A stretch of DNA of 64,000 nt. Source: Chlorokybus atmophyticus. Its lineage: Eukaryota; Plantae; Mesostigma and Chlorokybus algae. The translations under genes were made by a program, and so were the position numbers. Position 1 is the stretch's first letter. Every line of letters begins with the position of its first letter. Of the stretch, positions 27,662 to 40,314 are shown piece after piece. The DNA lies in the NCBI GenBank assembly GCA_009103225.1, contig RHPI01001292.1:287243-351242 (forward strand), read 5' to 3'. The notes beneath the pieces are model-generated. The model was given only the letters and a program-made list of their open reading frames with translations. It ran no database searches and had not been told where the DNA came from.

Positions 27662-28630
27662 TGACACACGTGCTTGACTGGTGTTTTTATATTTCAGCTT
27701 TGTCTACAACGTGTGTCGTTGCGCTGCTCGTGTTTGATGCACAGTTCGCTCCACAGAACGTGCTCGCGCCGTGGACATGCGCTGCAGCTATGTGGCAACA
27801 ACATACAAGTTGTGGTTTGCACAGCAAACCTCAAAGCATGCATTTCATACAGTATTTCATTAAGGACCCCTCACCTGCTCCCCTTTGCGCGCTGCATTGC
27901 TGGTGAACAGTTGACATGAGCCTCACCTTTGAGCATAATTGAATCCCTTGGCACGTGCTTGCGGTCACACGTTGCGCACTATTCTTCCTGATTGAGTAAA
28001 GGCCAGACATTGTCAACACACATGCATTGACATGTACAAAGCTAGACAATGCAATATGCAATGTGCTAGTCAATAAAGAACACGGCAAGGCATAGATTTT
28101 CCCAATAATTTGGGGGCCAGACCAGCGCTCAAACTAATAGAATAACTAGACCAGCTAGCCCTGACTGCTAAACAAAACTCTAGACTCTAACTAGAGTTTA
28201 GAGTCTCGGACAGCAGGCAGGGCAAGGCAAAGCAGCTAGATGTATGCGCATGCAACCTGTTCGCCAATGTGACTCTGCACCAACCAATCCCAACAAGTCG
28301 CAATCAGGTTTGAACACTGTTGTCTGCCTTGGACAGCAACAAGTTGGGGCTGGTTCCCTAAAACTACTGTCATGCAAAGTCCTGTACTGATGTGCAATTG
28401 TGTAATGAGAACTCGCAGCTGTCATACCGTACTGCATACTGCACAGTAGTGTCCAGAATGTACCAGCGCAATGTGGGATGTGGAATTGCTTAATAGAACG
28501 CCATGCTCGCTTGCGTTCAGCAGTTCTTTGTTCAGAAGCAGAGCTTGCACAGCCCCATGAATGAAAACGGCCAGCAGCTGAAATTGTATCAGACCTTTGT
28601 ACACACAATATGGACTGGAATGGCTTCAGA

Positions 28631-31600
28631 TCACGTCTTATTTTGCATCTGGTACCAGCTCCAAACCTGCAAATCAACCCCGTACTGGTTGAGAAAGGAC
28701 ATCCAACTATTGGCTTGCAGTAATTTGCCATTATGTCTTGAAGATCCCATCACCTCATTGAGAGAGCGGAGTTTGCGTGGAGGGCCAAACTTGGCAGGCG
28801 TGACATAGTAGTGGTCAACATGATTGCGGGGATTCTTGCGCGTGATGTTCTCCACGTGCCATTTGTCCAACCGCACCTGCATTGGGACACAACGATTAGG
28901 CAATGGCACACACTCATGCAATGCTGCATGAATACTACGCAACGGCCATGTGATAACCACGATTGTCGCTACTACGAATGGTTGCTTTATCATGCAGTAG
29001 CCGCAGCATTACGTGTAAATGCAGCAACTCGCTACATATCAAGCAATGTTGCAAGGAATGCCAACCTTTTCTGACGCCCAATCGCGCTGAGCTTGTGTTG
29101 GACGGTACTTATGAAGAGCAGGATGCCTCTGAACGTGCCGAGCAGAAGGCTTTCGTCTGTTGCCATCATCCTGCATGGCGAGGTATCTGTGCATCTGGTG
29201 AGCAAAGCATGAAAGCGTTGCCATTAGAATGCATCAAGCATGATAGCATCAATATGCCAAAAGCCATTCTTCAGAGCCGCACCGATTCAAGGCTCTTGAA
29301 CTTTACGCCCTCAGGTGATATGTAATATCTATCTATGCGGTTGCAGTTAGACTTCCTTGCTTTCTGCAAAACCACCAAAGTAATAAATCAGACATGTATT
29401 GCGGGTGACAGTCTTGGCGTGTTTCGAAGGTCACTTACCTCTGCAGGCGACGCGTACACCAGCACAACAAGCAAGCAAAACACATGTAATTGTCAGCAGT
29501 TTGGTGGCATGCGCTTGCTGCACTACTACATAATTGAATAACATTACATACCCAACAAGGTCCAGCCCTCCGGCATAGGGTACTTGTAGAATTTGATGGC
29601 ATCTCTGAATCCTTGTGTATCACCCCCAAACATGGCATCCAGCTGGGTCAACAGCTTCTCGACCTGCACAGTAAACAATGCACATACATAACATGACAAC
29701 CTCTCTTTGGCCATACTCATTGTCTCTCAGGGCCCAGCCGCAGGGTACTCACCGCTTGCAAGCTATAAACAGCCTCATTGTCCCCTTGTTCTTCTTCTTC
29801 TTCTTCTTCTTCTTCTGCTTTTTTCCTCCGCAGCCGAGTCCTGAATTTGCTCTGTGCAAAGCGCTGGAATATTATGTTTGTGGCCTCTGGCTGGGCCGCG
29901 TCTTGGAAAGTAGCTACCGGCCCGCACACATTCTTGACCATCTGGAGAAGGTCATCATGGTCGATGATGCATTTGACACGGTGGGTGCGACGATAGATTG
30001 TTGGCTTACTGTAAGCAGGGTGGACACTTGCTCTGGAGTCCAGAAGGCCGGCAAGCTCTGCTGTTGAGTGGGTCTGTTTGCTGCGTATGCATTGCTTGCC
30101 TGTTGAGAGAGATGTGATGGTATCAATGAAGTCCAGCAATGCAGCAAATGAGAGGCTTACAACCAGATACAAATGTCAGTCATGAGCCACTGCTGTTCTC
30201 ACTATGTTGAAAAATAACAAGGCCTTGTGAAGAAAAGCCGGCCGCCACTTCTGGTTGTTGTTTTGGTCGTTGTCTTCACTTGCAGAGAACACTGCAAAGA
30301 CAAAAGCCAACCGCCGATTCGTATGCAACATGATATGCACAAAAGCTAGCACATGCTTACTGCATCATTACCAGACTGTAGAAATGCCAGCTGTTGTTGT
30401 ACTTCGGCCTCATCTACGAGCCGCATGTTCGGAGGCTCGCCAACCCTGTTGAGGCCCGCGACCTGCGTGTTCACAGCACCCAAGGCACACATGACAGTCA
30501 GATAAATCTATTGCAGCTCCCAGCAGCTTACAGCAAGCAAACAGCCAAGCAGAAGAAATGTTGTCAATGAGGATGATGTGTCATGTGCACTCACAATCTT
30601 GCGTAGTAGGACTTTTGTATTGGGTTTGAAGAGCTCCCCGACAGCCAGTAGGTCAGCGTGAACATGTTCGAAAATGGTGGTGATGCGTACAAGCTCGCCC
30701 CAGTTCTGGAAGGTCCAATCAAAGCTTGGAGTGAAGGTCGTGTTGGCATCCTTGCCTTTCATAAGCAGGTTCATGTGATCACGCAGGCAAATGGCAGCCT
30801 GGTGGCCCCGCATCCTGTGGAGATACACGCAGCGTGACATTGATGCGTGCACACAGTTGCAACTGTGTGCACGGAGTGTGCATGTTTGTACACACAGAGG
30901 TGTGCAAGCAAATGCGCGAAACAAGCACACGTGACGATGGAACCAGCTTGTTGCACCACGAGTGGTAGCAGTTATCGACAGTACGCTAACCTGGCATGCA
31001 GCTGTCCATTCTGCATCATAGCATCAATACCGCGAGCAGCAAAGTTGAAGTCACGCAGCGCAGCATGGTGTGCGCGAACAAGGGCGTCCGCCTCGCGCGC
31101 CACCTTGTCGATCTGCAGCGCCACATGCTCTGCAAGAGGAAAGAAAGAAAACAGACAGAGAGAGACATGTCGGCTGCCTGGTCTACTGGATGTATCATAC
31201 CACTTGTATCTGCTTGGATGACATATCAACAGGTTACGCAAGTCTGTGTGCATCTGTAAAGATGCATCACCGGCTACCAAAACCAAGAAGCTCAAGCATG
31301 CACATGTTATCAAACGCTTGCGGGCAGTGCAGTGATACATGTATATGCATGCCAGCGCCCATGCGTGCATGCATGTATGTCATACCTACAAATGGCATGA
31401 CAAAGGCTGCTTCGCAGGCGTCCAGCAGTTTCGGCAGCTTCGTCTCAGCAGTCACTAAGTTTCTCTGGTAGCTCTGTCGGCCTCGCTTAAGAGTTTCCAG
31501 CAGCTCCGCGCAAAACCGTGCCGCGGCATCAACGTTAGCCTGAAGAAAAGACATGTTGGACTCATGCAGTTATGAGGTTGTAAAAGAGCGCCAACAAGCG

Positions 31601-34600
31601 ATCATGACCGACTTTGCCTATGTGTGTATCTCTCGCACTTACGCTCTCGTATTTGTCCCACACGCCAGCCTCACGCACACTGAAGAGTTTCTGAATGAGC
31701 CGCTTTGCATCCTCCAACAGGTGCCGGGACTGGCTTGACATGATGGTTTGGCACCTGAAAGCGAAGCTCAGTAACATCGGTAAGAATCCCAATCCCATAT
31801 AGTTTCACGCAAACATAATGACGGAAGTATGCACACAACCTTCGGGCCAGTTTGGAGTTGTCCTTTAGCAGACCTTCTGATGGCGCCACGCTCGCTTTGT
31901 GTATGGCAACATACAAAACGTAAAGAGGGCTCAGGTCATCATCAACTTGCACGAGCTCCGGATTATCGAGCCAACTGAAAAGGGTATGCGCACAGCAGAC
32001 ACATTACAATTGTACTGAGCATGATCACATTGCAAGCACACATGCTATAGTGGCAGAACCATCCAACTGTGCCTCCGTAGCTTTCTCAAATGCAATCAGC
32101 AGACAAGTAGTGGACTATGATTTACCCGAAGCAGAGAGATGCAGGAAATTCCCAACCGGTTCCATCTGAGAAAGTTGACATCAAAACCCATCCCAGCCAG
32201 TTGTTATGCCAGACACACACTATGACTTAACGATTAAGTCAAGCAATGATGGCAATTGGAGTGTTAGTTACCAAAGAGGGGGTTGGCCATGACGTTCCAC
32301 AGCTTGTAGCCTACCATATACGGGACACACATCAGAACAGTAAGCAAGGAACAGTTGTGCATGCGCAGATGAATGTACCATTGACTTCCCCATCGCGCAG
32401 CAGAGACTGGATGTCCGGCCAAACCGGCGTGATCATGGCCTTGTTCCAGGAAGAAGGCCGAGACTTCCAGGCCGGTGTGACACGCTCTTGGCCATCTTCT
32501 GTGACGCCAGAAAGTTGCCACCCAAACTGCCATGTGTGTACTTAGCGGTCGTCGAGTCAACACAGCGTGTTGAACAATAATCAAGACAAGTACTGCTGCA
32601 GAGTACCTCTTCCACTGTACATAGCTTTCTCCCAACCTCGAACACCTTGTTCATCTCCTGCTGCACTACCTGCTTGAACTTCTCCTTCCAGCGCTCCAGT
32701 CTGCCAAATCACACCAGATTGCTCTTGACTTATTCAACTGCAAAGCAAAGCAAGCACTTGGTGTATCTGGAGGAGACAGTGCCTGACAATGTGGGTGCGC
32801 GCATCTGTGCGTGTGCGCCAGAGTAAGTGTAAACTCAGTGCTCGCAAGCATTCTGCACAGACACACCACCACTCACGGGAAGCTGTCCCACGCTTTGATG
32901 GCCTGCGGTGCAGCCTTGCGGAGGCGTTGACGTGCGAGCTCCTGCATGTTCCCGCCGCCTCCACCTGAGCTGGACAGGGCCACACGCAGGTTAAACAGCT
33001 CCTCCTGCAGAGCTGCAAACTGCGCCACGATGGCGGACGCGCTCCTGAGCAGCCTGCAAGCTTCATCCTAATATGCAAAGAGAGGTTCAGCCAGTCATTT
33101 GCTTTCAGCATTCTGATAATGGTGCGTGCCTAGTCAAAACCTTCACCGACTGTTATGTACAAACCAATGTATGTGCCAATCAGTAGCACAATGGCCACAT
33201 CCGCGCACAAACGCACGCGCGCGCGCATTTACACAAGCACAGGCGCTCACGCGCGCGCGCGCATGAACATGTACACGCATTTACTCTTGACGGCTATATG
33301 CAGGCACACTGCATTCCGTGTATACCTTGAGGCGTGCAGCACCCAGGGTGACGGCCTCTTGCAGGAAGCTCTTGAGCTCCGGCAGTCTTGAGCTCTCAAC
33401 CGACAGTTGCTCTTTGTGCATCGAGTCAAAAAAGAGCCGCGGGTACAATGCTATGGTTCGCACCTGCTCCTCTACTGTAGCCGCTGCGGCCCTCTCTGTG
33501 ACATGCAAGTTTGCCAGTGAGAAGTTGCAAGTAAAAAACTTGCACAAAGCAACACACTTTCTCGTCAAGCGCACCAGCTGCAACATGTGCTACGCCGTGT
33601 TGGCGAATGAGCATTTCTGCTACACACGCCTTCAGCGTGCTCTTGTGACCAGCAAACACGTCCGCCTCCTTCTTCATCAGCCTCTCACGCTCTAGCAAGA
33701 CACAACATGTCACGAACGACACAATTATGTCGATGCAACTTGATGCCATTGCCTCCAACCACACCTTGCGTGGGTCTGCCATTCAGCAGCGCCGTGCAGT
33801 TGAGACCCTTTTGGCTGTAAGGAAAGCATTTGTCGCCGAGCATGACGAGTGCCAACGCGTGGCGTTCGGCACGAGTCAGTGTCGCTGAGTTTGGAAGCGC
33901 CTTCTGCTTGGACTTGACCAACGGGGATGAGGCCACATCCTGGGAGGTGCGTACCACACGTGCGAGCGCGGCCAACGCAAGCTGCTGCAAACAACCGGAC
34001 TCCCGGCATGCCACTTTCACATCCCTGAACAGTTTCAAGCACGAACGAGACACTGAGACACTTGTGCGTTGCGAGACAATTGTGTTCGCAACAGGCAATA
34101 ATGCCCTTGGGGATAGTAAGAGCAATGCAAAGGTGCGATGTATAAGAGATGCATGTGGCTAACAGGAAGCTGCCAGCAACATGATACGTGATGCTTAACA
34201 TCTTGCCATCGTCTGTTGATTACCCATCAATCTTGCGGTTATCGACGAGGAGAAGCGTGCCCGAAGCTTCTCTTACGGCTCTATCAAGGCTTCTTGTGCG
34301 CGCGTAATCTTGATGTCCTGCCCCGGGCGCATCCACCAGATCCATGCCACCACCCACCACCTCCCAAGGACTGCAAAGTGGTGCATGCGTGGACACAAGG
34401 TGCAAGTACATACAAGTCATGCCAATCCTGCTTCAGTCCATGTAACACACGCGCGTACGTGCAGGGGCACATATACAAACAGTACTACACTGTACCCTTT
34501 TATGACCACCAGCTTAATCAGTCGCCACCAGGGATTGCAAGATTTTGTGGTGTGCCATGCAATGAAGTCTCGGACCTGCTGCATGGCCTGCATACGTGTT

Positions 34601-37600
34601 ATAGATGTTGTATAAGTGACGAACATAGCATAGAAAGGCATGGTGCGTGCACTTTGATTGCTACTGTGTATCTGGCAATGAAAGTTCAATTCAAGTCATA
34701 GGATACCAGAGTGTAACCCACCTGAGACCAGTTGCCAGAAGAGGGCGTGTACACCAGCTTATGTCCCAATCGATCCTTATAAACGGCTGGAAGCTACGGA
34801 GCCAGTAGTTTACACAAGTGCATGCATGTGCGTCTGTTGGTGTGTACGCAATTGCTGAATAGCACATGTCAGTCCACTCCCCACCTTGAGCTTGGCGACG
34901 TCAATCTCGTTGAGAGGCTGTTTGGGGTCAAGTCCAAACATGGCCTTTGCAGTGTCCAGCTCACGTGCATCAAGCATGCTACGCTGTTCACCATTCCCAT
35001 TGCGGTGGTCATCATCACCATCATCATCATCACCACCAGCGTCATAATTCTTGTCAACAGCAGCTTCTTCCTCCACACGCTGCCGCTTTTTCCGCTGGCC
35101 ACCTTTCTTTTTCACTATCTCGCGCAAAGCCGCTTTGCGTAAAGCAGTCTCTGCAGCTTGCTGGCATGCAAAGGTGGTGACAGGTTGTGAGCGTTAGGTG
35201 GTGGTTGTGTAACGTGTGATGGCTTCGCGTGTGTATGTGCTGGAGAAGCACATTCACGAGGCGTTATCATGCACGCACACATTGAGAAAGTACTTACCAA
35301 TTCTTTATCCGCTGCTGTGATTGCAAGCGTGAGGTCACGAGCCGCTTTGCCAACCGCCTCAACGCTCTCGTAATAAAGAACCACTTGAAGTCTGACACCT
35401 GCAACAAGAAGGGTTGGCTTCCTGCGCTCCAAGTTGTCCTGTATGGGGGTATGTGTGCTACTACAGAGTCTAATGCTTACCTTTTGTCATGTAGCAGGCG
35501 ACACACGTCGTGTCCATGACATCCCCTGCACTCAACAGATTAGATCGTTAACAAACACAAGGCTGGTAGCGCATGTGCACAACACACGTACGCAAGTTAG
35601 CACTTGCCTTCCGGGAGAAGGTAATAGTCTAACTCATCCATGTTATCAACCATTCTCAGATGCTGGTTGTCACCATTATTGACTCCCTCTTCAAACCGCA
35701 CGTCGTACTTATACCGGTGCCTGGCTTCCCTTAACTCCACATCGTGTTCATCCACCTCCTCCATGTCTGGGACCCAAACAGAAACTGTTCAACAATGTGC
35801 ATGCATGGGGGCTTGCATGTGTGCTTGTGGTCATGTGTGCGTGACTCCGTGTGTGTGTGTGTGTGTGTAAGCATCAAACCTGCGACAAATTGAACTGATC
35901 GAAGCTTTCTTTTGCCCGCTGCATCAATTGCGATCACCCTCGCTTCATACCACGCATTATCTTCCACGCAGTACTCCTATGATGAGATGCAAACAAGAGT
36001 CAGTTGTGTTTCGCACACCACAGGTGGTTGTTAGCATCTCACGCATACACGAACCTCAACAAGTGCGCCAACCGGGGCATCGCGTATCAGCTCCACCTGT
36101 GTAAGCAACATTGAGGGCACTTTGCACGTAGTGCGCGCACGTGCATGCGCGTGCGTGGGTGGCTGTGTGCAAGCCATAAGGTAGCCAACAACCTGACAGC
36201 ATTGGGTTACACACTCTACTTACAGGGCTGCTTATTGTCTTCACGAAGGGATCGTGCATCTCCGAAGCAACAACCTCCATCTCGGGTTTGAAACCATCTT
36301 CTTGTACCGCAGCTTTGTACGCAGCTGACAGGTAAACGATAGAGCAACATCAATGTACAGACTCTTTTACCATCATTTATCAATGGGCAGCAATTGAGAT
36401 GATGCATTGATGCTGTGGTTGTAATCCCCCAACACATACCATGGTTGGGCTCACTGGCTTGTAGTATGTAATTGAGCTGCCAAAGCAACAGTCAGTACAC
36501 AAGTCCAGAGGTCGACCTTGCAAACTGATGCAATGACACTCACTGTGCTGGATTTGCCCATTCCCGAGCGTGCAACAGCAACCGTCGATGCTGCCACAAG
36601 TAAGCCAAGTTACAGCATTGTGCTTCACATTCTTCTGTTTGTTTCGAACAAGTAGTCCTTAGCATTGCCTGTTAATGTTTGGGCACTTACCGCGAAGACC
36701 TTTGAGCTGGTCCATGATCTCAAGCAAAGAGGTCTCAATGTTGCGTATGCGCTCCGCGTCTGGCAGGGCACCACCCTGTCCGGCAATGAGTAGTAGGCAC
36801 TATCAGTTGGTGTTGTATAATAAACACGCACACGGGCGCGTGCACTTGCCATGTATACAATGGTAGGATAAAGACTTAGATATTCAGACAGTCTAGGACT
36901 GTTCAGTAGCGACAGCAATGGAGTAACCGTATGTTCAAATCCAGCACGGGGTGCAGTGCAGCAGGGGAGTAGTAAATTTGTTGTGTGCACAAGCGTGTGT
37001 GCACGCACGCGCGCACACACCAATTGTCACACATATATTGTTCAATGATAGGATGACGTAGTACAGCACTCCACACCTGTTGTGTCCGTATATCCTTGCA
37101 TGTCGCGACCATGCCGCCCATCTCCGGCAGGATGGCCGCGATATTGTTCTGCCAGCTGGACGTCCCACCATCGCAAAGCCTCCACCATTCGCCTGTGTAC
37201 CAGGCAGTTTGTAATCTTGCAACATACCAAGACTCAGAAACTATGCATTGATGTGCGCACATGGACATGTGTGTTCGGATGAGTCCTACACTGTTTCACA
37301 CATGCTTATAGAGCATGTACTGCATGCATGGCCAGTGTAAGAGTAAAACAAGCAGCCCAGAGCCTGACCAACAGCATCTGATCTGATGTGACATGTTGTG
37401 ATGTTGTCAAGTGGGGATAGTGTAATGCACTCCTGCTCACACACACCTTTCCCTGGGACCACTTCATTGTCGTCATCTTTATCGTCCGGCACACCATCAG
37501 TGTCGTAGCCGTCTTCTTCCTCCAGGTCAACGTCACTGAGCGCCTCCAGCTCCAGAGTGAACTCTCCTCCTTCTGCCTGCTGTTGCAAGAGAGGACTTTG

Positions 37601-37931
37601 CGCATGGGCATTAGCCTAAGCATACAACTGCAATGCTCAAGTGTCATGTCATGTGCTGAGCTCAAGCCAGAAGCCTCAGCAACTGCACAAGCAACAGCAC
37701 ACCTGTAAGCACAAGCACAAGCATGTGTACCATAAGCACAGGATCAAGCAAAAGCATGAGCGTCAACATGAGCATAAGCATGAGCGTGAGCACGAGCATA
37801 AGTATGAGCACGGAGACAGGCATGTTCATGAGCATGGGCATAGGCATGTAAGCGTGCATTGCAGCAGATCTGACTGCCATCTTTCAATACCATGGCGTAG
37901 ACTGTTATCCAACCTGCGCGTGCGTGCTCAT
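28631..37931 (-). CDS. Large multi-exon protein: dynamin-like (SLIP-GC/NUGGC-like) GTPase with internal Tudor-like domain and two C-terminal MBD-like domains
   Basis: About 38 phase-consistent exons traced by hand, roughly 1,450 aa. G1-like VAVARSGMGKSSTLNYIL (36590-36440), Tudor-like VGALVEEYCVEDNAWYEARVIAID...YKYDVRFEEG (36096-35680), G2-like LLPEGDVMDTTCVAC (35620-35481), G3 GMDLVDAPGAG (about 34345-34315). MBD1 is PMPEGWTLLEKARKSNCNRIDRYYISPEGVKFKSLESMHRYL. MBD2 is LDKWHVENITRKNPRNHVDHYYVTPAKFGPPRKLRSLNEVWSWY. The start codon is uncertain. Confidence 0.75.
37690..37850. repeat. Intronic degenerate hexamer array (AAGCAC/GAGCAT)n
   Basis: Visible tandem aagcac/aagcat/gagcat units in the first intron of the GTPase gene. 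Confidence 0.75.
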
Positions 37932-38791: not shown

Positions 38792-40314
38792 ATGCGGCTG
38801 CTGTCTGGCAAAGGGTTGACTGCCACCGCTGCAGAGATCAGAAATGTGAGTTGTGTTGTCTGTGCACAACTGTGCGTGCCAGCTTTCTCATTATAAGTAA
38901 ACCGCAGTTGGCTTTTGGCAGTTCACTGTGGGGGAGATGCCAGGCCCGTCACGATTTGTGAAGCCGCGCTCCGTCACATTCACGCAGGATGGAATGGTGC
39001 GCACCTGATGCAATACAAGGCTGAATGGTAACTCATGAATCCTTGCATATACACTGACTTACAAAGCCACACGCGGTCACATGACCCCTCCCTGCCCTCC
39101 CNNNNNNNNNNNNNNNNNNNNNNNNNNNNNNNNNNNNNNNNNNNNNNNNNNNNNNNNNNNNNNNNNNNNNNNNNNNNNNNNNNNNNNNNNNNNNNNNNNN
39201 NNNNNNNNNNNNNNNNNNNNNNNNNNNNNNNNNNNNNNNNNNNNNNNNNNNNNNNNNNNNNNNNNNNNNNNNNNNNNNNNNNNNNNNNNNNNNNNNNNNN
39301 NNNNNNNNNNNNNNNNNNNTGTCTCCCCCCTTTCTTGGCGCGCAATACAGCACGCATACACGCACTCAACGCACGCGTCCGCATACGCACATGTAAGCAG
39401 AGACACGCACCCACGCAGCCATGCACTCGCACACGCATGCACGCACGCACGCGTAAACGCATGCACGCACAGATAGACACGCATGCATCATGAGTGTATG
39501 TGTGCTGTCACGCACTTGCGTGCACACACACGGGCGCAGACACACATGCACGCAAGCAAGCAAACACAATGTCCCACCTTGAAGCTAGTACAAGCCACCA
39601 TGTACATTGCTGTCAAATCATCCAAAACATCCTTTGTTACATCAAGCCACTGCCTGCTATTCACACATCTCTCATTCCACGTGCAGAAGCGGCGTTGGGA
39701 CATGGTGCTCTCGCATCCATCTGTCGCCATCGTGTTGTACCACACCGGCTTGGATGCAGTCATACTGGTGAAAGAGCTGGGTGTTGGTGACCCAACTGTC
39801 CTCTTGCAGCGTTGTGTACTCATCATGTAAACCAACTTTGCAGGTGAGGCAGTTCAGGCCGGCGGTGTATGCGAGCGCATTGCGGGCGGCTTCAAGCGCG
39901 ACAACGGACAACGATGATATTGTTTCCTCAGATGTGTCACTGCCATTGAGCGTGGGCTTTGCATACGAGCTTTGCGCGGGCATCGTCGATAAGGCCGACA
40001 GGTCCCTTGCGGAGATAGCCAAAGAGGAGGTGTTGGAAGAATGTGGATTTGACGTGCCCGCGACCGCATTCAAGAAACTCACCTCTTTCGTGAGCTCGGT
40101 GGGGATATCCGGCCCGCGCCAGACCCTGTTCTTCGCCAAAATCGACGACACCATGCGTATCGCTGATGGCGGCGGTGGCGTTGATGGCGAGGCCATTGAT
40201 GTCGTGGCTTTGCCTGTATCCGCCATTGATCGTTTTGTGTTTGACGCCGACCTGCCCAAGAGCTCAGGTTGCATGTGGGGCGTCACATGGCTCAAGATGC
40301 ATCTCGGTAGGTGA
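38792..40314 (+). CDS. NUDT14: NUDT14-like Nudix hydrolase (UDP-sugar/ADP-sugar pyrophosphatase), 4 exons
   Basis: Exons 38792-38845, 38922-38996, 39687-39767, 39844-40314 are in phase. SRFVKPRSVTFTQDGMKRRWDM, VRQFRPAVY, YELCAGIVDK...EIAKEEVLEECGF (Nudix box), SSVGISGPRQTLFF and GGGVDGEAIDVV parallel animal NUDT14. In-frame upstream ATGs could extend the N-terminus. Confidence 0.85.
39102..39319. other. Assembly gap (218 N) inside NUDT14-like intron 2
   Basis: Run of N flanked by C-rich tracts. Confidence 0.99.

Follow-up and report, generated by a model that had tools for sequence, protein, structure and literature searches.

Background

Membrane remodeling is the main role for which dynamin-family GTPases are known, and their nuclear SLIP-GC (NUGGC) branch is, to our knowledge, barely understood mechanistically. 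In B cells, the nuclear GTPase SLIP-GC of mammals enhances the stability of the genome (PMC12107551, citing Richter 2009 and 2012), and the same paper treats SLIP-GC-like genes as immune genes in fishes. Here we describe an expressed gene of the alga Chlorokybus atmophyticus, located on the minus strand at 28631-37931 of a 64,000-nucleotide window (contig RHPI01001292.1, positions 287,243 to 351,242), whose product of about 1,440 residues appears to combine a divergent SLIP-GC-type G domain with two C-terminal methyl-CpG-binding-domain (MBD) units in tandem.

After SLIP-GC, the nearest neighbors of this G domain in fold comparisons are CrfC and the bacterial dynamin-like proteins (DLP1/2, DynA, BDLP, IniA and SynDLP). 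The likeness to the latter is confined to the G domain and comes with low template-modeling (TM) scores, most of them remodel membranes, and we know of none in the group that carries chromatin-reader domains. CrfC, annotated as 'Clamp-binding protein' in Swiss-Prot, presumably acts at replication forks, which would make it a precedent for a dynamin-family protein on DNA rather than on membranes. A functional analogy is offered by the MORC-type GHKL ATPases, which couple a nucleotide-driven dimerizing engine to a chromatin reader in the silencing of methylated DNA and transposable elements (TEs); fold and nucleotide (GHKL, ATP) are unrelated to those of a dynamin-type GTPase and no homology is expected. 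MBDs contact methylated CpG through two arginine fingers together with an Asp and a Tyr (R111, D121, Y123 and R133 in MeCP2). In plants, MBD5 and MBD6 silence TEs downstream of DNA methylation (PMC10651127, PMC9770095).

Results and discussion

The GTPase and MBD exons belong to one spliced, expressed gene

The locus consists of 38 exons and a 2-nt micro-exon, amounting to about 1,437-1,441 codons. An earlier note, made from the sequence without database searches, had proposed a chain of about 38 exons with canonical splice sites. A splice-aware model, using codon and splice models trained on 22 RNA-confirmed introns, regains a 38-exon chain of 1,440-1,441 codons that is the same as the proposed one from exon 37576-37447 downward; a self-trained model built before the RNA was used had recovered most exons, and the motifs quoted in the note were all found in short stop-free pieces of the minus strand. 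The proposal of canonical sites throughout has to give way at two points, a GC-AG intron and either a micro-exon or a GT..GC intron (see below). A length-maximizing exon chain was discarded because it ran straight through introns.

Contigs from RNA runs X1-X4 were placed on 28450-34440 (5,991 letters). Those of X1 and X2 are spliced with CT..AC joints, equivalent to GT..AG on the minus strand; 15 such joints are listed and more are implied by the coordinates of the contig pieces. Joined with the reported cut shifts, the confirmed exons form an uninterrupted frame of 968 codons, running from PWEVVGGGMDLVDAPG in the region of the G3 motif to ...VWSWYQMQNKT and the stop codon, and a loose contig end at 34371 leads on into the WWRLIKLVVIKG exon. 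Public runs include RNA data of the same organism, and X1 contains 0.34 of the sampled words of 28631-37931; the share expected if every exon and no intron were present is 0.38, or about 0.34 after correction for the part of the 3' untranslated region (UTR) outside the query. All 16 sampled words of exon 10 (35604-35766) occur in X1 (share 1.00), indicating that this exon is transcribed in full, although the public gene model trims it. A stop-free chain of 1,440 codons with spliced-RNA confirmation cannot be a product of chance, and the spliced contigs of two runs support the GTPase and MBD exons being parts of one expressed gene, as the earlier note had claimed and had proposed to check by RNA mapping.

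Three combinations of start and donor were compared for the first coding exon, with the confirmed donors (scores 4.2-7.7) as yardstick. The first has its ATG at 37893-37891 directly before the donor gtattg (ccATG/gtattg at 37891, the slash marking the junction; score 6.4). The second, that of the earlier note, has its ATG at 37931 and a donor after 37914 that scores 3.6, below all 22 confirmed donors. The third, from the public model, has its ATG at 37823 and a donor after 37731 (score 6.2), and reads through a hexamer repeat. Translated in the public model into a hydrophobic N-terminus (MLVLTLMLMLML...), this tandem repeat (37747-37849; hexamer/24-mer, AGCATG-like) probably lies in UTR or intron and is not part of the coding sequence. 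Splice scores favor neither form of a 12-nt alternative acceptor (±AMQQ). Exons 10 and 11 are probably joined across a GC-AG intron at 35607..35526 with a textbook GC donor (GAAG/GCAAGT), giving LLPEG/DVMDTTCV; it replaced a GT-AG junction (LLPEGNAGDV), the choice being decided by splice scores only. The junction ambiguities in the 5' part leave the domains unaffected.

A probable 2-nt micro-exon and the loss of the MBD units from the public gene model

The mRNA contigs of both X1 and X2 carry two extra letters, AG, at the junction inside the first MBD unit, where the aligner reports a GT..GC intron. A plain canonical acceptor without these letters leads to a stop after four codons. If the AG is instead read as a micro-exon, all four splice sites are canonical and the introns measure 111 and 75 nt; the donor then scores 8.7, more than every confirmed donor, and the downstream canonical acceptor 9.8. 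The GT..GC intron (29551..29366) was set aside in view of its non-canonical acceptor, which scores -8.7. The contig sequence is compatible with both, and the 2-nt micro-exon appears to be the best reading of the extra letters.

The gene had been described in the earlier note as hidden. A public Chlorokybus atmophyticus model does exist (P0001; eukprot jgi/Chlat1/.../Chrsp115S01690; 1,308 aa), with 100% identity to the 86-aa exon that follows G3, and it joins the helical middle region of the protein, here called the stalk, to the first MBD exon. At the site of the micro-exon it reads into the intron and ends in ...PEGWTLLGM, without both MBD units; it also lacks 9 and 22 residues of exons 9 and 10, respectively, and six residues (VMPFVE) that are confirmed by RNA. 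Because P0001 fails at the micro-exon, both MBDs are lost and the architecture is hidden even though the gene is annotated. That an automatic model dropped two reader domains over a 2-nt micro-exon suggests that algal genomes may hold more architectures of this kind than have been counted.

A divergent SLIP-GC-type G domain

The G1, G2 and G3 motifs noted earlier are present and align with the corresponding residues of the family. In a 25-row alignment of this G domain with 24 relatives, which covers the G-domain block, the gene keeps the P-loop Lys and Ser, the T-x-C...A-C of switch I, the W...LIK.V and G..VD.PG elements, and the Arg that follows. The P-loop ARSGMGKSS has the form [AG]xxxxGK[ST]. 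Switch I contains the conserved Thr within T-x-C...A-C, and its LLP is restored only with the RNA-supported full exon 10. The G3 motif LVDAPG conforms to DxxG, with its D, P and G in invariant columns, and WWRLIKLVVIKGPW...LVDAPG corresponds to the family block WPLIKVVkIY...LVDLPG.

When the search was restricted to the pre-G3/G3 block, a single protein other than the gene's own was scored, P0005 (BLASTP 40% over 57 aa, pairwise E=3e-8), and the aligned block WPLIKVVKMSGPW...LVDAPG lies inside its Pfam Dynamin_N domain (1472-1714, E=3e-20). The G domain of P0005 in turn retrieved 80 metagenomic loci (L001-L080), mostly as uninterrupted matches, of which the sampled members are Dynamin_N at 53-65 bits. 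Against a hidden Markov model (HMM) of this sub-family (42 sequences), the spliced protein reaches 31.5 bits (E=6e-12 for a single target; 27 bits for the block domain), compared to 3.2 bits for the best of 200 shuffles and 1.0 for the reversed sequence. In a language-model atlas, all top ranks are Dynamin_N clusters (0.91, 176 shared features). A sequence search of the PDB with P0001 returned nothing, and prokaryotic genomes searched by pattern with the two-row G3 block yielded no relative that could be confirmed. P0005 itself is a protein of 2,002 aa from an ENA metagenome contig of 9.6 kb, with its Dynamin_N domain far C-terminal and about 1,450 N-terminal residues without a Pfam family at E<0.01.

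A single-sequence AlphaFold model of the G region was unusable (predicted local distance difference test, pLDDT, 39), and an alignment-based model reached a pLDDT of 60-80 in the core (mean 49.5). Foldseek on the G model placed Nuclear GTPase SLIP-GC of mouse and human first (E=6.5e-6 and 1.2e-4; probability 1.00), followed by bacterial DLP1, DynA, IniA and CrfC, and in the PDB by bacterial dynamin pairs, SynDLP, BDLP, IniA, EHD4 and mitofusin; at TM-scores as low as those obtained, these matches support family placement only. For the G region, the AlphaFold and Foldseek check proposed in the earlier note came out with SLIP-GC in first rank at low pLDDT and TM.

Taken together, these observations support a divergent SLIP-GC/NUGGC-type dynamin-family G domain with G1-G3 intact and a degenerate G4, in line with the assignment made in the earlier note. 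With SLIP-GC/NUGGC of mammals and the SLIP-GC-type Dynamin_N proteins from fungi and other eukaryotes (P0005, L001-L080), it shares the G1 form GxGKSS, the switch I form LxPT.C..AC, the block W-P/R-L-I-K-x-V...L-V-D-x-P-G with the next Arg, the position of G4, and the best Foldseek rank. It differs from them in being too divergent for Pfam Dynamin_N, in carrying a 130-residue insert and extra low-complexity inserts, in having TSQD instead of SKTD at G4, and in a C-terminal region without detectable homology.

Two MBD-type units in tandem at the C-terminus

The MBD and Tudor-like parts of the protein were searched exon by exon, and the AlphaFold models cover the G region. The 27-aa core exon of the first unit (MBD1) on its own matches Pfam MBD over profile positions 22-46 of 77 with E=0.0047 and 17 bits, against a gathering score of 21, and its matches among PDB sequences (11 of 11) are all to MBD4, MBD2 or MBD1 proteins (best E=0.011). 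The exon before this core ends in PMPEGWTLL, and the PEGWT start of MBD1 is identical to that of MeCP2. The second unit (MBD2) aligns with MBD1 in register at a Smith-Waterman score of 58, compared to 22.4 +/- 4.8 for shuffled sequences, none of which (0 of 2000) reaches 58; MBD2 thus reads as a significant internal duplicate of MBD1. A two-row profile of both units gave 12 matches in the PDB, 10 of them MBDs, including Arabidopsis MBD6 (AtMBD6) over positions 6-38, in an alignment that takes in MBD2's own W-x-V-E...R-K strand.

Both units share the R-K, D-x-Y-Y, P-x-G and K-x-(R/K)-S core with the MBD family (MeCP2, MBD1-4, Arabidopsis MBD5/6/7). At the finger positions, MBD1 has R-K, D-R-Y-Y and then K-F-K-S where MBD4 has K-F-R-S, and MBD2 has R-K, D-H-Y-Y and K-L-R-S, compared to R-K-F-R-S in AtMBD6, so that MBD2 keeps both arginine-finger positions. 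Unlike described family members, the two units stand in tandem at the C-terminus of a GTPase and score below threshold; MBD1 has Lys for the second finger Arg, and MBD2 has KW for GW, an insertion of 3-4 residues (GPP) before K-L-R-S, and a truncated end with only about 11 residues after the core. The two MBD-like units of the earlier note, separated by a basic linker, are therefore supported at a sub-threshold level by the Pfam and PDB matches and by the internal duplication; of the Pfam families that it had proposed to check, Dynamin_N and Tudor were not recovered and MBD was matched below its gathering score, at the 17 bits given above.

A lineage-specific insert in place of the claimed Tudor domain

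The Tudor domain claimed in the earlier note did not find support from Pfam, PDB or fold comparisons. What occupies its place, after helix alpha1 and before switch I, is an insert that measures 130 residues (aa 142-271) in the correctly spliced model and is found in none of the 24 aligned relatives; by this alignment it is a real, exactly placed and lineage-specific element. Neither a Tudor/Agenet profile nor a solved Tudor sequence was matched in Pfam or the PDB by exons 9 and 10, by P0001:195-262 or by the whole of P0001. The atlas returned only low scores (about 0.5) for the Tudor-like part, with some Tudor_3, Agenet and Tudor_5 clusters as weak leads, and AlphaFold gave a low-confidence beta-hairpin at GALVEEY/AWYEARVI only, from a P0001 query without 9+22 residues of the insert. 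The segment VGALVEEYCVEDNAWYEARVIAID resembles strands one and two of SMN-type Tudor domains, a lead and not a test. A Tudor fold is accordingly unconfirmed.

The helical stalk and charged segments

The long helical region expected from the earlier note is borne out: the stalk of about 680 residues is helical in the predicted models, and it found no Pfam match. The protein has basic clusters (KKKGGQRKKRQR; RLRRKK) that resemble signals for nuclear import. The N-terminus is acidic, and further basic and acidic low-complexity segments occur along the protein.

Table 1. Positions of the gene and its parts in the window (1 = first letter of the 64,000-nucleotide stretch)
Feature	Position	Strand	Description and basis
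Coding span	28631..37931	-	ATG 37931 to stop TGA 28633-28631; gene models, RNA, partial public model P0001
First coding exon, candidates	37731..37931	-	three start/donor options
G1/P-loop ARSGMGKSS	36547..36573	-	Walker A, AxxxxGKS form; aligned to family GNTGAGKSS, K and S invariant; weak RsgA/AIG1 P-loop matches
130-residue insert (aa 142-271)	35627..36449	-	between helix alpha1 and switch I; holds the 'Tudor-like' VGALVEEYCVEDNAWYEARVIAID...; exon 10 fully transcribed
Switch I/G2 LLPEG/DVMDTTCVACY	35491..35620	-	spans the probable GC-AG intron; compared to family LVPTNCMRACT, T, C, A, C kept
Basic cluster KKKGGQRKKRQR (nuclear localization signal-like), then acidic run	35077..35112	-	sequence
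Family signature block WWRLIKLVVIKGPW...MDLVDAPG (G3 DxxG)	34322..34530	-	split by intron 34495..34371, junction seen in RNA
G4-like TSQD	33937..33948	-	relatives SKTD/TQTD; Asp kept, Lys replaced by Ser; within one column of family G4
Stalk, ~680 residues, mostly helical	29756..33792	-	RNA-confirmed exons; ends in poly-Glu, (GAA)n 29785-29820
MBD1 (aa ~1306-1352) ...YPMPEGWTLL/E/KARKSNCNRIDRYYISPEGVKFKSLES...	29177..29591	-	Pfam PF01429, PDB matches, RNA junctions
2-nt micro-exon AG	29439..29440	-	context tgcag/AG/gtaagt; keeps MBD1 in frame
MBD2 (aa ~1390-1436) VRLDKWHVENITRKNPRNHVDHYYVTPAKFGPPRKLRSLNE/VWSWYQ	28649..28876	-	similarity to MBD1, two-row profile, RNA junctions
RNA-confirmed part	28631..34587	-	23 3' exons, G3 exon to stop via both MBD-like units, and junction to upstream WWRLIK exon
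3' UTR, approximate end	28235..28630	-	X1 contig 1 (941 nt) reaches ~215 nt below 28450

Functional implications

We consider it fairly probable that this expressed Chlorokybus gene of about 1,440 codons, with its SLIP-GC-type G domain and tandem MBDs, acts on methylated chromatin or in genome stability, and a nuclear GTPase recruited to methylated DNA or chromatin for silencing is a plausible form of such a role. The basic clusters would bring the protein into the nucleus, and the MBD pair would tether it to DNA. Its likely target is methylated CG sites, given that the Asp-x-Tyr core and the two arginine-finger positions are retained in MBD2. On chromatin, the G domain together with the helical region might dimerize or oligomerize in a GTP-dependent manner, as in the dynamin family, and the outcome could be the bridging, compaction or remodeling of methylated chromatin, in the silencing of TEs and heterochromatin, or a protection of genome stability like that attributed to mammalian SLIP-GC. 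The insert might add a second chromatin contact if it formed a Tudor/Agenet-like barrel.

Several results weigh against this reading. Neither Pfam nor NCBIfam recognizes a family in P0001; its G3 block and pieces stay below the Pfam Dynamin_N gathering score, and Pfam MBD rises above its cutoff in neither P0001 nor its pieces. The MBD2 exon alone is unrecognized by Pfam, the PDB and the atlas, MBD1 carries Lys at the second arginine-finger position, and binding to methylated DNA is not shared by all MBDs (PMC11077058). In the G domain, the absence of Lys from the TSQD of G4 makes nucleotide specificity uncertain, and the quality of the fold models is low (pLDDT 39 and 49.5), with Foldseek TM-scores of 0.2-0.3. 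The stalk gave no significant match to a profile of the downstream regions of the relatives. Conservation, too, has no full-length relative or orthologue to show it among 1.8 billion representatives searched with the 86-aa exon and 5.8 billion word-indexed proteins.

Part of this evidence could also describe a SLIP-GC-like GTPase of genome stability or replication, in which degenerate MBD-like units serve as general DNA- or protein-binding modules rather than as 5-methylcytosine readers, with no link to silencing. The closest named relatives are SLIP-GC proteins, and SLIP-GC is a factor of genome stability (PMC12107551); CrfC, the 'Clamp-binding protein', is among the fold matches; and the Lys of MBD1, the sub-threshold MBD scores and the existence of MBDs that do not bind methylated DNA (PMC11077058) all point the same way. 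Set against this, the first R, the D-x-Y and the second R of MBD2 all align in register with those of AtMBD6 and MBD4, and the tandem pair suggests selection for DNA reading. We regard a role of this kind, divorced from methylation, as unlikely. A GTPase of innate defense or genomic conflict, whose MBDs would sense methylated foreign DNA of giant viruses or transposons and whose GTP-driven assembly would be the response, would accord with a lineage-specific, fast-evolving protein without orthologues and with the treatment of fish SLIP-GC-like genes as immune genes (PMC12107551). Pfam, however, detected no effector domain such as a nuclease, protease or TIR in P0001 and its pieces, and the idea is pure inference; we consider it improbable.

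A further question is whether the fusion might be an artifact of exon chaining, either because at least two neighboring genes were joined or because the MBD exons lie on a separate, shorter transcript. The contigs are interrupted at the (GAA)n run (29779-29831), repeats being skipped in contig placement, and near 31896-32126; the junction 32126/31974 was deduced from P0001, the reading frame and the splice consensus and is not directly listed in the RNA; and contig depth climbs toward the 3' end, from 22 to 35 to 67. Yet both breaks lie inside the open frame, the one at the repeat within a single 189-nt exon with both flanking junctions seen; the frame meets no stop before 28631; the rise in depth is what the 3' bias of poly-A libraries would produce; and P0001, an independent public model, spans the same exon. 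A composite of separate genes is therefore very improbable.

If the SLIP-GC/MBD reading is right, a natural fusion of the SLIP-GC branch with MBDs hints that such GTPases can work on chromatin or DNA, and suggests what SLIP-GC-like proteins may recognize. A bolder version would see here a new class of chromatin effector, a dynamin-type, GTP-driven and oligomerizing mechanoenzyme that is anchored by its tandem MBDs to methylated DNA, and possibly by a Tudor-like insert to methylated histones, and that compacts or tethers methylated chromatin. We think this unlikely; if true, dynamin-family mechanics would reach beyond membranes into epigenetic silencing, and would do so at the base of the streptophyte lineage. 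All such proposals concern a single-species orphan with sub-threshold MBD calls and an unconfirmed Tudor domain, whose function is read from its sequence.

Distribution and novelty of the architecture

In the exhaustive search with the 86-aa exon, P0001 was the only true match, the rest being repeat-protein noise. The literature searched yielded no description of a dynamin-family GTPase with an MBD, and the architecture was met in none of the other proteins searched, which agrees with the earlier impression that it had not been described. The component families are known; what is new is their combination, along with the insert and the hidden state.

Other observations in the window

An assembly gap of 218 N (39102-39319) lies about 1.2 kb upstream of the gene and limits statements on the promoter and the upstream neighbor. 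Run X4, from organism B, gave short, unspliced, low-depth contigs on 28450-34440 that cover exons and introns alike and are DNA-like in this respect. One X4 contig of 378 nt matches 32108-32174 only, with unrelated flanks, and may come from a repeat, or from a related locus of a different strain.

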